DNA of 64,000 bases from Oopsacas minuta (taxonomy: Eukaryota; Animalia; Porifera): the NCBI GenBank assembly GCA_024704765.1, contig JAKMXF010000255.1, positions 186,001 through 250,000 of the forward strand, written 5' to 3'. Below the pieces are notes generated by a model. It saw only the letters and a program-made list of their open reading frames with translations, was not told the DNA's origin and made no database searches. A program made the translations under genes and the position numbers. Shown here in pieces: positions 46,199 through 52,107 of the stretch (positions are counted from its first letter, which is position 1; each line of letters starts with the position of its first letter).

Positions 46199-47632
46199 TC
46201 AGAACGCTTGGAGAAGGCCATCCGTCTTACCAGTAGAAACCACCAAAACAGTCCCCTCTTTGGTCAAACAGATACCCGTGGGGTAGCTCATATCATCACG
46301 TCCCTGTCCACACTGTGAAATGTGACCTACGAGTGCACCGGTCCCTGATACAACTACAACCGTATGCTTCCAGTAATCAGTGACTAGACAATTACCTTCT
46401 CCATCTATAGCGAAACAAACAGGCTTCTGTAGCATATTACCACCAGCAATACTCCTTATATGGTCGCCATTCTTATTGTATATCTGTAGAGGAAACTCAC
46501 GGTATGAGAAATTATTCCAGAATCCGTTATGAGCAAACAGTACATAGATTAAATCCCCGCATATTCTAATGTAATTCAATTTTCGTCTGTCAGAAATATC
46601 AATAGTCTGTAGTTTGAATCTCTTCATCACTTTCAAGGTATCGGGGTCATGTATTACTACTATATAATTCCTCCATTCACAGGCGTATAGCAAACCGTTA
46701 TCATCCTGATCTAATCCACGGTATGCACTCTTGGATACAGGACACTTGGCTAAGAATTCTCCTTCAAACGTGAATTTAATCAGAGCGTAGTGTGACGTCA
46801 CGAATATCTCCTTACTGTTATGACTCACGACTATATAGATTGGGTAAGACAAGTCTCTGTGAATAATAGAGCGTATATATTCCCCATCAGGGGTGCATAC
46901 TTGTATACGATGGTTCCCATGATCCGCTACGAATATGGTACCAGTTTCTTTGCATACAGCTATCCCTCTAGGATTAATTATTCCTTCAGTAGATGAATCA
47001 GATCTAAACCTAACCCATACACAATGTGTAAGATCTGTATATGGTCTGTGGTTTCCATTCTGTTCGAACAACTTTGGTAACACTGGAGCTACACTATTAT
47101 CCATTGAGACATGTTTAATCTCGGGTATTGGTATCGCATCCTTAAATTCCAACTCCTCAATTGGGTTGTTAAGGTTACCAAATTGTCGTAGACTCTGTTC
47201 TATGCCTTGTGTATCAGAATTAACCTTGAGATCAGATAAAACAGCTATTTCATTCTCTAACTGTTGTAACTTAGTGAGTAGAGGTTGTTGAGCTACTTGT
47301 AGGGTGGTTATAAGAGAATTCTCCTTCATAGATAGACTCATTTCTTGTAAAGTTTGTTGAATACTTTTAAGCTGAAGCTCCCTCTCTCCTATTTCTCTCT
47401 CCAGCTCTACACATGCTTGATCAAATCTATCGGTAAAATCTCTCTCACAGGTATCGATCAGGTCCCGCACATGAGCGAAATTCCTCGTCATAGCTTGACG
47501 CTCCAAATCCATTCTCTCTCTGAACAATGTTATCATAGATTCAGCTTGATTCCCGGGCTGCATTAGAGTCATTTGAGATTCATCGAGAGAATCAAAATCA
47601 TCGTTTTCAAATTGAGGATCATTACAAGCCAT
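46199..47632 (-). CDS. Coiled-coil + NHL-repeat beta-propeller protein (TRIM-NHL-like, no RING/B-box)
   Basis: N-terminal coiled coil; NPRGIAV...IFVADHGNHRIQV, KPVCFAID, YPTGICL repeats. Confidence 0.85.
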   Translation of the reverse strand: MACNDPQFENDDFDSLDESQMTLMQPGNQAESMITLFRERMDLERQAMTRNFAHVRDLIDTCERDFTDRFDQACVELEREIGERELQLKSIQQTLQEMSLSMKENSLITTLQVAQQPLLTKLQQLENEIAVLSDLKVNSDTQGIEQSLRQFGNLNNPIEELEFKDAIPIPEIKHVSMDNSVAPVLPKLFEQNGNHRPYTDLTHCVWVRFRSDSSTEGIINPRGIAVCKETGTIFVADHGNHRIQVCTPDGEYIRSIIHRDLSYPIYIVVSHNSKEIFVTSHYALIKFTFEGEFLAKCPVSKSAYRGLDQDDNGLLYACEWRNYIVVIHDPDTLKVMKRFKLQTIDISDRRKLNYIRICGDLIYVLFAHNGFWNNFSYREFPLQIYNKNGDHIRSIAGGNMLQKPVCFAIDGEGNCLVTDYWKHTVVVVSGTGALVGHISQCGQGRDDMSYPTGICLTKEGTVLVVSTGKTDGLLQAF

Positions 47633-48354
47633 TCTATCTAAGTTCAATTTGACACAATTATTTCTCTAATTATATCAAATCATAGACCTGACGTAACGTT
47701 ACTCGTATATCTAGCTAGTTAGTGGCTTTGTACAGATATAATTATATCAACGTGGCTGAACCGATGATATGATTCACTTACAATTAAGCTATAGCACTAG
47801 CAGAAGTATCGAAGGTTTTAGTACTTATTCATTCCTTAGAAAATTAGTCAAATCAAACCCAAGCATGCGATCCTAGGGGAGACAAAAAGGCTTTTGTCTA
47901 GGGTAAGTTCCGCCCCCGGGACGACAGATCCTATGACCACCAGTGCGTATAATAGAATCTAAAAAACATTTTGCCAGTGTTTGAAAATGCAGCTCGGCGT
48001 TTCCGGATCGCCTGAACCCAATCAAGAAATTCTTCTGACAATTACTAGTGATAATTTCTAAATAAAAGCAATTAAGAATACTCACAAAGGTACCCAAGTT
48101 TGACTGTTAATGAATCTACCATAACTTCAGAATAAGCTCAGTACTCTTAGGAAGATACGAAATTTCTGAAGAGATTTTCAACAAGTTCAATTAATTCTGA
48201 CAATTAAGATATTATTTGAATAAATAAACTATGGGTACAAGTATGAAATATACTCTCTAGAATCTACGATAGGATTATAAGCTAGTGTTATATAACATAG
48301 GAGGGGGGGTAGCTATTAGTTCACACTCAATATATATATATATCCTAACGAGCT

Positions 48355-50076
48355 CTACTTCACGTAGAACTGACAATCAGGATCTTGAATGCTTGTCTTA
48401 GCTGGAGCCTTCAACTCTCCGGTGGGGCTAATAGCAACAAACTGTCCTTGGTTAGCAAGAGACTCTAGGAGAATATGTCTGTCGTATGTCTCATGGATTA
48501 CGAAGTCAACTTGAAGCCCTGTTCCTTGCTTCCCCTTCACAGCACCGTTCTGGATGCACAGTACATAACCAGGATGCTTTTTGTTCAGGAACGATACGAT
48601 ATTTCCACCTCTACTCCTTACTATGAAGTCACTACTAATACCAGATCCTCCCTTACTACCGATTAATCCGCTCTCTTTGATCTCTATAGTATCACCGTAG
48701 GAGCGAGACACCAGTTGTATGGTAGCTCCATCTCTAAGTGAGTTTAGGACAGAAGGTTGTCCGTCGTATCTCAAAAGCTCAGGCATTTGTTCTTTAATAG
48801 GAGCCATCTTTACAATCCTGATTCTGAAGTGTGTTTCTACTTGTCCAGCAGCTAGTTTATCAGCTCTCATAACCATTCCGTTATGAGCTACGCCCATGAA
48901 TTGTCCTGGAGTCTTGACTGACTCAAATGCTACATAGTTATCATGAGTAGGATGTACTCTCATTTCACAAGAGGGACCACCCTGACCACGTCCTTCAAAC
49001 TCGTTCTTGAAGATACATAGGTAGAAGGATTTTATTGGAGCGCTCCTAAGCATGATCAGCCCTGGTGCTTTTTCTATGACCAAGAGCTCGCTCAGCTCTC
49101 CATAGTCACCAGATCCTGTTATGACACCATTCTTAGCGATTAGCATGGGTTTACCACTCATTTTACTAATCATCTGAATAACATTACCGTCCCTGAGAGC
49201 GTAACTAACGGGTAGACCGGGAGCTGGTCCTGTTGATGAGGGCGAGGCTACGGGTACACCCTCTCTAATGACGGCAGCAGTAAACTGAGCGAAGTGATGA
49301 CCAGGCTGACAATGCTTGGGGTCAGCAATAGCACCATCTTGTGTTACACCTATGCACAGTCCTACTTCTCCCACAGAGGAAAAGCTAACTGATTTATCCG
49401 GAGCTTCAACTAGAGTGAAATGACATAAGGTTCCACCCTGTCCGGTACCATTGACAATTCCCTGACAAATGGAAAGGTAATGAGTGGGATTCTTAACGCT
49501 TGAGAGTGACACAACTCCCTCAGCTACAGAATTCACTTTGAATTGAGCAATCTCATCTTTTCCATTAGGACCTCGGCAATCAACACGTCCGTCTGCAAGT
49601 ATCCTAAGATAGTTCGATACTTTACTCTTCAAGGATATGACATTTCCATTCTTGAATGCACCAATAGTAGTTTTAGGCTGTGCTGGTCCTCCGACAGCCA
49701 TCTGCTTCACCTTACCTAAAACTGAATCGAATGCATTACCCATATCTTGAGTAGTAGACTCCATTGTTGGAGCTGGATGTGCAGGAGCTACCGCTGGGAC
49801 TGGAGCGTAGCCTTGAGAAGCAGGAGCCGGGGCATAGCCTTGAGGAGCAGGCGCATAGCCTGGTTGCGGGGCATAACCTTGTGGGGGTGCTGTTGCCTGG
49901 GTGTATACTTGCTGGGCAGGGGGAGCTGATACTGGTTGTGCGTACCCTTGAGGTGGTGGAGCATTGGGGACAGTGCCTGGGGCTACCTGAGGGGGAGGGG
50001 CATAGCCGGAAGCAGGTACGATACCTTGTGTCTGTGGGTAGAGTCCTTGACCTTGAGGCTTTGGATATGATTCCAT
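48355..50076 (-). CDS. P/G/Y/A/Q-rich N-tail + three tandem FGF-like beta-trefoil domains, no signal peptide
   Basis: Six GYA(P/Q) repeats then three ~130-aa repeats; repeat 1 aligns by eye with FGF2 core motifs (YLRILADGRVD, EGVVSL, HYLSI, CHF). Confidence 0.7.
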   Translation of the reverse strand: MESYPKPQGQGLYPQTQGIVPASGYAPPPQVAPGTVPNAPPPQGYAQPVSAPPAQQVYTQATAPPQGYAPQPGYAPAPQGYAPAPASQGYAPVPAVAPAHPAPTMESTTQDMGNAFDSVLGKVKQMAVGGPAQPKTTIGAFKNGNVISLKSKVSNYLRILADGRVDCRGPNGKDEIAQFKVNSVAEGVVSLSSVKNPTHYLSICQGIVNGTGQGGTLCHFTLVEAPDKSVSFSSVGEVGLCIGVTQDGAIADPKHCQPGHHFAQFTAAVIREGVPVASPSSTGPAPGLPVSYALRDGNVIQMISKMSGKPMLIAKNGVITGSGDYGELSELLVIEKAPGLIMLRSAPIKSFYLCIFKNEFEGRGQGGPSCEMRVHPTHDNYVAFESVKTPGQFMGVAHNGMVMRADKLAAGQVETHFRIRIVKMAPIKEQMPELLRYDGQPSVLNSLRDGATIQLVSRSYGDTIEIKESGLIGSKGGSGISSDFIVRSRGGNIVSFLNKKHPGYVLCIQNGAVKGKQGTGLQVDFVIHETYDRHILLESLANQGQFVAISPTGELKAPAKTSIQDPDCQFYVK

Positions 50077-51426
50077 ATTTCTAAAATTTAAAAAAAATAC
50101 TATTTGATTCAATAAAAATATATTCTATTTATATTCCCCACAGATGAACCCAAGCCTAATCATGATAAGCATATCTATGAATTGAAAGTTGATCATGCGT
50201 TTGTTTCAAATGTTTTTCGTCACAACAAATCAGATATATACGTTGATATGAAACTAAAGGTTGAGTGGAATAACGTACCATGAACGCCACAGATAACATA
50301 GGACTATATTTGGAATAAAGTGGCTTCTGTACACAAATGAGGGCAGTGATAAGTTAAACCTAGATCGCAATAGTAAATGATTCTTTGAAATGAATCTATA
50401 AATGTATATATTGATAATTGTTACAAATCAGATCTAAAATAAGAGTGATTTACCTATTCTGTAATTTCAGAACATAATTATACACAAGTTGATCACGTGA
50501 GATCATGTAATGAATAGAATAACGTAATTGACTGCGGGCATACGTGGAATTTGCAAAGAAATGCTAGTTAACAAAATTTACTGTACAAACTCCATCTTGA
50601 ATTCAATAATGGAGATTTCCAGAATGTTTATCCACTCTTCACAAGTTCTAATAATATCATTATAATGCTCAGAGCTATGGCGTACATCCTATTGAGCTCA
50701 AACAATACTACAGAAAGATGTCCTAGTTTGAAAGATACGGCTTGAAATCAGAATTCAATTATAGTCCACAAGGATAATCGAATAAGTACCGGGGGAGTTG
50801 TAATAAACGGGTAGGTTGAGAGCGTTTATTCAATACACTATAGATAGTGGGTGCTAGTACGCTCCATTAGGCATATTATTTTAATCACAAGGTGGTGGCT
50901 TGAGTCGCTCCGAAACTGTAAAAATTATAATAATTACCCTGATCAGCATCATGGATGCGGCTAACATCGGTAGTACCAGCAGCTCAAAAGAAAGGGGCAG
51001 TCTACTCGTCCCAAATATATTTTAAGTCAACGCTTGCCTATTTTGGGCATAAATCATTTTTCATGGATTAGCTAGAAACGAGAGGGAAGGCCTGCTTGCT
51101 GTCACGGTGTCACTGATATATTTTTGTAATTGTTATTCATTAGCAAAATAAAATTACTAATTATCTAATGGGTCGACTTAGGACGAGTGGATATACTGAC
51201 AGTTGACTGGCATTCAGGATAACCACTACCCTGGTTGGACCACCTAAATAATCCCCTCTATAAACGTATATAATCCGTAACTTATAACAAAAGTAATACA
51301 ATCCTAGTGAATATTCTCAGAACAGTCCATAGTCATAAAGAAATAAAATAACCATGTGGTCACATCAAGTAAAATAACATTAGCATCAGTTTGTGGAGAC
51401 GTGAGATCAATGAGAGGTAGTACTAT

Positions 51427-52107
51427 TCACAAAAACTTCAATGATTTGGTCTTATGCTTGGGTGGCTCCTTCGGCTTTTCATCAAATACTTTCACTGCTT
51501 TCGCTGCTAACGGTTGGTTAGAAAGACTCAGTGAAGTGTCAAAGCTTTTGGACACGATCACCATGTAGGAAGACCCGGAGGGACTTGGGAGAATTTGACA
51601 AAGTTTCCAGCCATCTGACAGAGACGAGAGGAAAGAGGCTAACTCATCATATTTGAGACTACACATTCTGTGTACACTGTTAGCCTGAAGCTCAAATTTT
51701 CTATCTTTTATTTTCTGTTTTACAATTTCCAACAACCCTGATATGTTAAAAAACTCTGCTTCAGCAATTAGAGCATTTTCACAAAAATCCTCGCAAAGAA
51801 AAACACGGCCACTTCTCATATAGTTGAGTAACATAGAGAAGTATTTAGGGTCCCTGTCAATTAGCAGGGCGCCCGTCTCGTCGATGTATGGACTTAATTT
51901 GTCCTGAGACTCAAGAAAAAGCTTGTGTAGAAAACAGTTTGGATATTTCTGGATAGTTTTCTGGCTAGTACAGAATATAGTGCCACCTACATTAAGTTTG
52001 ACCCATTCTCTCGGCGGTGTGAGTATATTGTCCGATTGCTTCTTTATTAACAAATCTATATTTTCGTTATTGTCTGTTACTGGTACGTCGATATTATTCT
52101 GGGCCAT
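51427..52107 (-). CDS. KCTD5: BTB/POZ protein of KCTD2/5/17 group
   Basis: WVKLNVGG..F, DETGALLIDRDPKYF..LLNYMR, C-terminal ELASFLSSLSDGWK. Confidence 0.85.
   Translation of the reverse strand: MAQNNIDVPVTDNNENIDLLIKKQSDNILTPPREWVKLNVGGTIFCTSQKTIQKYPNCFLHKLFLESQDKLSPYIDETGALLIDRDPKYFSMLLNYMRSGRVFLCEDFCENALIAEAEFFNISGLLEIVKQKIKDRKFELQANSVHRMCSLKYDELASFLSSLSDGWKLCQILPSPSGSSYMVIVSKSFDTSLSLSNQPLAAKAVKVFDEKPKEPPKHKTKSLKFL

Follow-up and report, generated by a model that had tools for sequence, protein, structure and literature searches.

A conserved, intron-less gene of the glass sponge Oopsacas minuta encodes a low-complexity tail and three tandem beta-trefoils, two of them of the fibroblast growth factor type

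Introduction

Signalling by fibroblast growth factors (FGFs) is held to be eumetazoan, yet the fold of the ligand needs an earlier source. In one review (PMC8224027), bona fide secreted FGFs and FGF receptors (FGFRs) are restricted to cnidarians and bilaterians, and further papers likewise describe the FGF pathway as being of eumetazoan origin. The same review, citing Bertrand et al. 2014, states that genes predicted for choanoflagellates, sponges, and ctenophores include an FGF domain or FGF-like precursor. Here, we analyzed a gene of the glass sponge Oopsacas minuta that lies in a stretch of 64,000 nucleotides (positions 186,001 to 250,000 of the forward strand of contig JAKMXF010000255.1, assembly GCA_024704765.1; hereafter the window, whose own numbering is used throughout) and encodes a disordered tail followed by three tandem beta-trefoils.

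Several described systems resemble parts of this protein. The FGF-homologous factors (FHFs; FGF11-14) are non-secreted cytosolic adaptors with the FGF fold, fascin is a cytosolic protein of tandem beta-trefoils, and galectin-3 and annexins A7 and A11 carry uncharged tails of Pro/Gly/Tyr/Ala/Gln repeats ahead of folded binding domains. An initial annotation, made from the letters of the window alone, had proposed an intracellular protein with three FGF-like trefoils and a tail of the galectin-3/annexin type. FGF is not mentioned in the O. minuta genome paper (PMC10280926), and our literature search found no description of a family with a tail and three trefoils or of its function.

Domain architecture

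The gene and the parts of its product are as follows.

48355-50076, minus strand: complete, intron-less coding sequence of 573 codons plus stop (stop codon 48355-48357), from the list of open reading frames (ORFs)
49762-50076, minus strand: tail (residues 1-105), disordered and of low complexity (Pro, Ala, Gln, Gly, and Tyr), with six GYA(P/Q) units, from composition and motif positions
49660-49761, minus strand: conserved connector (residues 106-139) with a short amphipathic helix at about 110-123 (113-121 in the model), from the AlphaFold2 (AF2) model and conservation among hexactinellids
49261-49659, minus strand: trefoil 1 (T1, residues 140-272), FGF-type, from Pfam FGF, PDB profiles, and the tree
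49201-49260, minus strand: linker 1 (residues 273-292), Pro-rich with a GPAPGLP core, in which G283, P284, P286, and G287 are invariant
48802-49200, minus strand: trefoil 2 (T2, residues 293-425), the most FGF-like module, from Pfam FGF, PDB profiles, and the AF2 model
48742-48801, minus strand: linker 2 (residues 426-445) with a conserved LLRYDGQPS segment, in which L435, D438, G439, and S442 are invariant
48358-48741, minus strand: trefoil 3 (T3, residues 446-573), a divergent copy, from the hhalign match to T2 and the tree

The three trefoil segments were similar to one another. With blastp, T1 matched T2 with an E value of 1.4e-14, T2 matched T3 with 1.9e-14, and T1 matched T3 with 4e-7, and hhalign aligned T3 with T2 at 98.5% (E 3e-15) and with T1 at 94%. 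The full-length AF2 model contained three all-beta domains at residues ~140-272, 295-423, and 450-573. These results confirmed the three tandem beta-trefoils that had been proposed for the protein.

The whole protein matched Pfam FGF (PF00167, cut-off 24 bits) over three stretches with 75.2 bits (E 5.7e-21). T1 and T2 exceeded the cut-off when searched alone (31.3 and 38.9 bits, respectively) and matched no other family, and T3 alone was below threshold for both Fascin (18.5 bits; cut-off 23.1 bits) and FGF (16.6 bits). The Ricin family was absent from the Pfam matches of every trefoil. The FGF-like character that the initial annotation had given to all three repeats therefore held by this measure for T1 and T2, while T3 fell below the FGF and Fascin cut-offs, and none of the domains scored as fascin or ricin in the Pfam comparison that it had suggested. 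The assignment of T3 as a fascin domain was considered and dropped, since hhalign makes T3 a diverged copy of T2.

For each trefoil, we made a profile from the sequences of five hexactinellid orthologs and compared it with PDB sequences. The T2 profile matched FGF18 (1.2e-7), FGF8 (1.5e-6), and FGF4 (2.8e-5), and the T1 profile matched FGF1-derived Symfoil designs (3.7e-6) and FGF1 (0.009); the T3 profile had no match. The LRILADGRVD motif of T1, for which an FGF parallel had been pointed out, aligns with the FGF1-derived Symfoil repeat.

Structural comparison of the trefoils

When a model of T2 was compared with 48,161 PDB representatives (VIA), the best match was FGF18 (Z 22.0, 1.4 Å over 125 residues, 24% identity), followed by FGF4, FGF10, FGF8, FHF2A, FHF1b, FGF9, and FGF20. 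The top nine rows were all FGFs or FHFs, with Z from 19.4 to 22.0, and below them came fascin-1 (Z 18.2), HA33 (17.9), and assorted lectins (15-17). The top 50 Foldseek matches of the T2 model were all FGFs, so that the structural check proposed earlier placed FGFs and FHFs at the top throughout. Matches in the ESM Atlas were confined to trefoil clusters of a generic kind (fascin, ricin, LOXHD1). The label 'FGF-like' is right for T1 and T2, given the results from Pfam, the PDB profiles, and the T2 model.

A fold search with the whole chain was set aside as evidence on the trefoil subtype. It returned only proteins with several trefoils (fascin, a mosquitocidal toxin, and HA33), with root-mean-square deviations (rmsd) of 18-19 Å and template modelling (TM) scores of 0.2-0.3, and such matches are uninformative on subtype because rmsd values of this size reflect only the presence of several trefoils.

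The same comparisons bear on a different reading of the protein, as a fascin-like bundler of actin filaments (or microtubules) that would cross-link them within the syncytial tissue that glass sponges have. Fascin-1 was among the best whole-chain Foldseek matches (E ~5e-17), the whole protein reached 22.7 bits for Pfam Fascin, through T3 and just under the cut-off, and relatives of the trefoils were found in proteins with doublecortin domains (see below). However, the whole-chain rmsd and TM values speak against such a bundler, and so do the number of domains (three, not four), the long linkers, and the lack of confidently predicted packing. Neither T1 nor T2 matched Fascin, and fascin lay ~4 Z units below the FGFs in the T2 comparison. 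We regard a fascin-like bundler as rather improbable.

Tail, connector, and linkers

The first 105 residues of the protein were 27% Pro, 19% Ala, 13% Gln, 10% Gly, and 9% Tyr and included only two charged residues. The GYA(P/Q) units were located at residues 24, 44, 67, 73, 80, and 89, and the YP dipeptide occurred just twice in the tail. The predicted local distance difference test score (pLDDT) of the tail was ~30 in the AF2 model, in which residues 1-136 were disordered apart from the helix at 113-121. The composition, motif positions, and pLDDT bear out the initial description of a disordered GYAP tail of ~105 residues with six GYA(P/Q) units.

The number of tail units differed among orthologs, and the motif was kept. 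In the ortholog at locus L001, which belongs to another hexactinellid, the tail (L001:8101-8326, plus strand) comprised 6.3 copies of a 36-bp unit (12 residues, PPPQGYVQPATA) with 95% identity, and this array is a recent tandem expansion. In the window, the tail contained only a 1.9-copy trace of a 21-bp unit (49822-49861). Judged from the ortholog comparison, the tail changes fast yet preserves its motif.

The helix of the connector had a hydrophobic moment of 0.49, compared to a shuffle mean of 0.34, and distant relatives have similar Gly-Lys helices ahead of the trefoil. The GPAPGLP core of linker 1 was kept as far as Amphimedon, and pLDDT was low at residues 274-288.

Departures from canonical FGFs

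No hydrophobic leader was found in the first 60 residues, where the maximum Kyte-Doolittle value of a 15-mer was 0.37, in agreement with the lack of a signal peptide noted at first. The PROSITE FGF signature (PS00247) had no match in the window protein, and the same pattern was found in 18 FGF8-like proteins among our matches. Alignment to the FGF8-like proteins showed that the basic heparan-sulfate patch was absent from all three trefoils: the stretch that corresponds to the heparan-sulfate site in this alignment (beta10-beta12 region) had a net charge of 0 in T1, +3 in T2, and 0 in T3, compared to +8 to +10 in the FGF8-like proteins. Tryptophan was absent from the entire protein, which therefore has no ricin-type QxW motif.

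By its sequence, the protein is not a canonical FGF, as it has no hydrophobic leader, no signature, and no heparan-sulfate patch and has three domains, not one. It is probably not a ligand of FGFRs either; according to PMC8224027, FGFRs with FGF-binding immunoglobulin (Ig) domains are missing from sponges.

The trefoils and the tail could also belong to a leaderless exported factor or lectin, similar to galectin-3 or to FGF1 and FGF2, whose trefoils would bind ligands of the matrix or the cell surface and whose tail would oligomerize. Chimera-type galectin-3 likewise has a tail, similar in composition, that stands ahead of a ligand-binding-type fold, FGF1 and FGF2 are themselves leaderless, and the beta-trefoil lectins SeviL, MOA, and HA33 are structural neighbors of T2 (Z 16-18). 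However, the protein has no QxW motif, no tryptophan, and no ricin-type Pfam match on any trefoil, the basic heparan-sulfate patch is absent, and every FGF and FHF outranked the lectins in the VIA comparison. Export as a lectin or factor of this kind is unlikely.

Gene structure and conservation

The ORF at 48355-50112 (minus strand) opens at TTG, and an in-frame ATG at 50076 gives a protein of 573 residues with an uninterrupted frame. The start at this ATG was supported because five orthologs open at the homologous Met and a stop codon lies 12 codons upstream; one of these five orthologs is a transcriptome ORF called complete. A database protein annotated with Pfam FGF was 100% identical to the window protein. 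Directly upstream of the start codon, an A/T-rich 21-bp unit was present in 1.9 copies (50086-50124).

Hexactinellid proteins found by word searches (n = 6) were 63-76% identical over the full length, and the orthologs were collinear with the window protein. The nearest named protein was that of the glass sponge Vazella pourtalesii (72% identity), for which there is a transcript with a complete ORF. In the trefoil region, pairwise ratios of nonsynonymous to synonymous substitutions (dN/dS) among hexactinellid orthologs were 0.05-0.13, with synonymous sites near saturation. The gene is a real hexactinellid gene under selective constraint, with strong purifying selection on the trefoils and linkers.

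The window has a G+C content of ~36% and genes of animal type. On the same strand, the gene is flanked by a BTB_2 (KCTD-type) gene (51427-52107) and an NHL-repeat gene (46199-47647). The same two neighbors were found in five other hexactinellid assemblies (L001-L005), where the order is RasGAP/VPS9, BTB_2, the FGF-like gene, NHL, GIPC, sarcoglycan, and ZIP, and the FGF-like gene was intron-less in all five syntenic loci. Nearly all genes of this conserved RasGAP/VPS9-to-ZIP block (window 46199-52107, minus strand; L001-L005) were called as single ORFs.

Relatives in sponges and other eukaryotes

A profile of the trefoil region, searched against 1.84 billion representatives, had 258 matches with E ≤0.001, of which 66 were at ≤1e-10; the taxa given here come from the minority of matches that carried taxon names. 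Sponge relatives were found in Ephydatia muelleri, Geodia barretti, and Sycon ciliatum, and other animal relatives in the hemichordate Glandiceps, the brittle star Amphiura, the sea star Patiria, and the jellyfish Sanderia. Outside animals, there were relatives in the amoebozoans Planopodium and Vermistella and in Anaeramoeba, where five to six FGF-type trefoils stand in tandem. Two proteins of the metamonad Anaeramoeba flamelloides (P0082 and P0188) had near-identical tandem trefoils and 163 bits for Pfam FGF. Both carry the automatic annotation 'fibroblast growth factor 1', which is misleading.

Among demosponges, the Amphimedon protein XP_011404280.2 (E 4.7e-16) has the same kind of tail, with PQGY(A/V)PP, and behind it two trefoils, which aligned with T2 and T3; no T1 exon was found within 8 kb upstream of its gene (locus L006). 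In Ephydatia muelleri, protein KAL5487133.1 (553 residues) consists of T1, a PQY-rich linker, and then T2 and T3. The orthologs in these two demosponges are listed as LOC105312944 (Amphimedon) and Em0011g320a (Ephydatia). Linker 1 of the window protein (49201-49260), which is short and rich in Pro, may be a remnant of this Pro/Gln/Tyr-rich region between the Ephydatia trefoils. Introns were present in the demosponge genes and absent from the hexactinellid genes. We found no full-length ortholog that had already been characterized, a possibility that the initial annotation had left open: all bear the database names 'uncharacterized' or 'hypothetical'.

Many relatives share one plan, in which a region rich in Pro, Gln, Gly, and Tyr is followed by a short Gly/Lys amphipathic helix and one to three trefoils. 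The pairing of such a region with FGF-like trefoils recurs in sponges, Amphiura, Glandiceps, and the amoebozoan Planopodium. The gene is the hexactinellid ortholog of an uncharacterized sponge family (Ephydatia, Amphimedon, and Geodia). This family in turn belongs to a far broader group of eukaryotic trefoil proteins that are Pfam-FGF-positive and non-signalling. The occurrence of the tail and trefoil pairing from Amoebozoa to echinoderms points to a possible conserved cytosolic role.

FGF-type trefoils were also found in five giant proteins (P0026, P0028, P0041, P0047, and P0075) that combine doublecortin (DCX) domains, PLAT domains (4-13 per protein), and either one or two trefoils that match Pfam FGF. 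These proteins put the FGF-type trefoil in a clearly intracellular, cytoskeleton-linked context, including in vertebrates. One of the giant DCX and PLAT proteins, from a shark, carries the name 'lipoxygenase homology domain-containing protein 1-like'. An FGF domain outside eumetazoan signalling, on which the initial annotation had placed its interest, is therefore not new: it is on record for sponges, ctenophores, and choanoflagellates (PMC8224027, citing Bertrand et al. 2014), and we found it in Amoebozoa, Anaeramoeba, and LOXHD1-like proteins.

Within the O. minuta genome (61,460,524 bases in 365 contigs), the trefoil profile had a sole other match, a paralog with two trefoils on contig C356 (110333-111545, minus strand; L013:642-2024, minus strand). 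Its exons, read singly, gave a leaderless protein that starts with MGQANTN and continues with a Gly/Lys amphipathic helix, after which come two trefoils of FGF-like character, and its gene contains introns. This paralog is not a canonical FGF. Its Gly2 and Thr6 fit an N-myristoylation-type start. An internal segment of the window protein, ...DMGNAFDSVLGKVK..., resembles the N-terminus of the paralog, as if a tail had been prefixed to an older protein made of the MG start, the helix, and trefoils.

Phylogeny of the trefoil domains

To place the trefoils among their relatives, we built a FastTree phylogeny of 201 trefoil domains, excised by hidden Markov model (HMM) from all fetched proteins, and an IQ-TREE phylogeny of 95 domains and 144 alignment columns. 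In the IQ-TREE phylogeny, hexactinellid T1 grouped with trefoil 1 of Ephydatia (91/82), and hexactinellid T3 grouped with the last trefoil of the Ephydatia, Amphimedon, and Geodia-type proteins (98/90). This domain-level orthology of T1 and T3 with demosponges indicates that the three-trefoil protein predates the split of hexactinellids and demosponges.

The relation of these trefoils to true FGFs was less clear. In the FastTree phylogeny, the sponge T2 domains adjoined the FGF8-like proteins with a local support of 85. In the IQ-TREE phylogeny, the FGF8-like proteins instead formed a clade (100/100) with a long stem that left all sponge trefoils outside, and this clade was joined weakly (68/79) to the first trefoil of LOXHD1-like proteins, with an unresolved backbone. 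When T2-like domains and FGFs were forced into one clade, the cost was 5.4 log-likelihood units, and the approximately unbiased (AU) test was neutral (p 0.39). A sister relation of sponge T2 to canonical FGFs thus found neither support nor rejection in these analyses. The FGF sample consisted only of FGF8/17/18-type proteins, because those were what the profile reached. The phylogenetic comparison that the initial annotation had called for thus yielded domain orthology across sponges and left the relation to true FGFs unsettled.

T2 was the domain most similar to FGF8/17/18, a subfamily common to cnidarians and bilaterians. One scenario is that the secreted FGF ligand of eumetazoans descends from a T2-like module of an ancient cytosolic family of tail and trefoil proteins. 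If this was true, the sponge protein would preserve the pre-signalling state of the FGF fold, but we hold such a descent to be doubtful and would expect it to fail.

The tree also bears on the reading that the protein is a true proto-FGF ligand acting through an unrecognized sponge receptor. Two domains pass the Pfam FGF cut-off, T2 is nearest to FGF8/17/18, and the FastTree grouping of T2 with the FGF8-like proteins would fit. However, IQ-TREE did not recover that grouping, and the AU test was neutral on it. The protein has no leader, FGF signature, or heparan-sulfate patch, and according to PMC8224027 no Ig-bearing FGFR is found in sponges. A proto-ligand is highly improbable.

Proposed function

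Taking identity and function together, we consider it on balance probable that the protein is a cytosolic multivalent adaptor or scaffold. As to identity, the proposal is close to certain; as to mechanism, it is tentative, with a chance that we put well short of even. The protein most likely stays in the cytoplasm. Its three rigid trefoils would each offer a protein-binding surface, as in the intracellular FHFs and fascin, and the Tyr/Pro-rich tail, which is an internal linker in Ephydatia, might add weak multivalent self-association or docking.

Several points weigh against a cytosolic scaffold. FGF1, FGF2, and galectin-3 leave cells unconventionally, and a missing leader is compatible with export. 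Scans of the tail for ALG-2, WW, and SH3 motifs found no ALG-2 type-1 motif, no PPxY, and only two PxxP. The likeness to the annexin and galectin-3 tails is therefore compositional only, and the ALG-2-type tail of the initial annotation was not recovered with the type-1 pattern PPYP...YP. The full-length AF2 model had a predicted TM score (pTM) of 0.34 and gave no confident prediction of domain packing, so that multivalency is at present an architectural property only. The structural comparison rests on T2, for which the single-domain model was made (40-row alignment, pLDDT 95.4).

Significance and comparison with known systems

The gene provides a clean, complete, and intron-less example of a non-signalling FGF-type trefoil protein from the earliest-branching sponge class, and its three-trefoil layout is old, because it is common to hexactinellids and demosponges. 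The gain is incremental, as FGF-like domains of sponges and choanoflagellates are already in the literature. Our small additions are orthology at the level of single domains between sponge classes and the extension of tail and trefoil proteins to Amoebozoa. The role of the family could be approached in tractable sponges such as Ephydatia.

Compared to canonical FGFs, and especially to FGF8/17/18, the window protein has the same beta-trefoil subtype, and T2 shares their C-x-hydrophobic...DNY..ES core. Canonical FGFs differ in being single domains, whereas the window protein consists of three domains and a tail. The FHFs FHF1b and FHF2A matched T2 with Z 21.0-21.1 and were tied with secreted FGFs. 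They are, however, single-domain vertebrate proteins nested in the FGF family, and we saw no specific sequence affinity between FHFs and the window protein.

The fascin likeness lies in the tandem beta-trefoils of a cytosolic protein and in the weak Pfam cross-match on T3. Fascin differs in having four trefoils packed in two lobes, whereas the window protein has three and is under the Fascin cut-off. The tails of galectin-3 and annexins A7 and A11 are comparable in composition and position; the unit of the window protein is QGYAP, and the folded domains are unrelated. The LOXHD1-like DCX and PLAT proteins are intracellular and share one or two Pfam-FGF trefoils with this set, but they are giant PLAT-repeat proteins whose trefoils are not orthologous to T1-T3. 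The true relatives are the uncharacterized proteins of Amphimedon (XP_011404280.2) and Ephydatia (KAL5487133.1), and the low-complexity region, which is N-terminal in hexactinellids, separates trefoil 1 from trefoil 2 in the Ephydatia protein.

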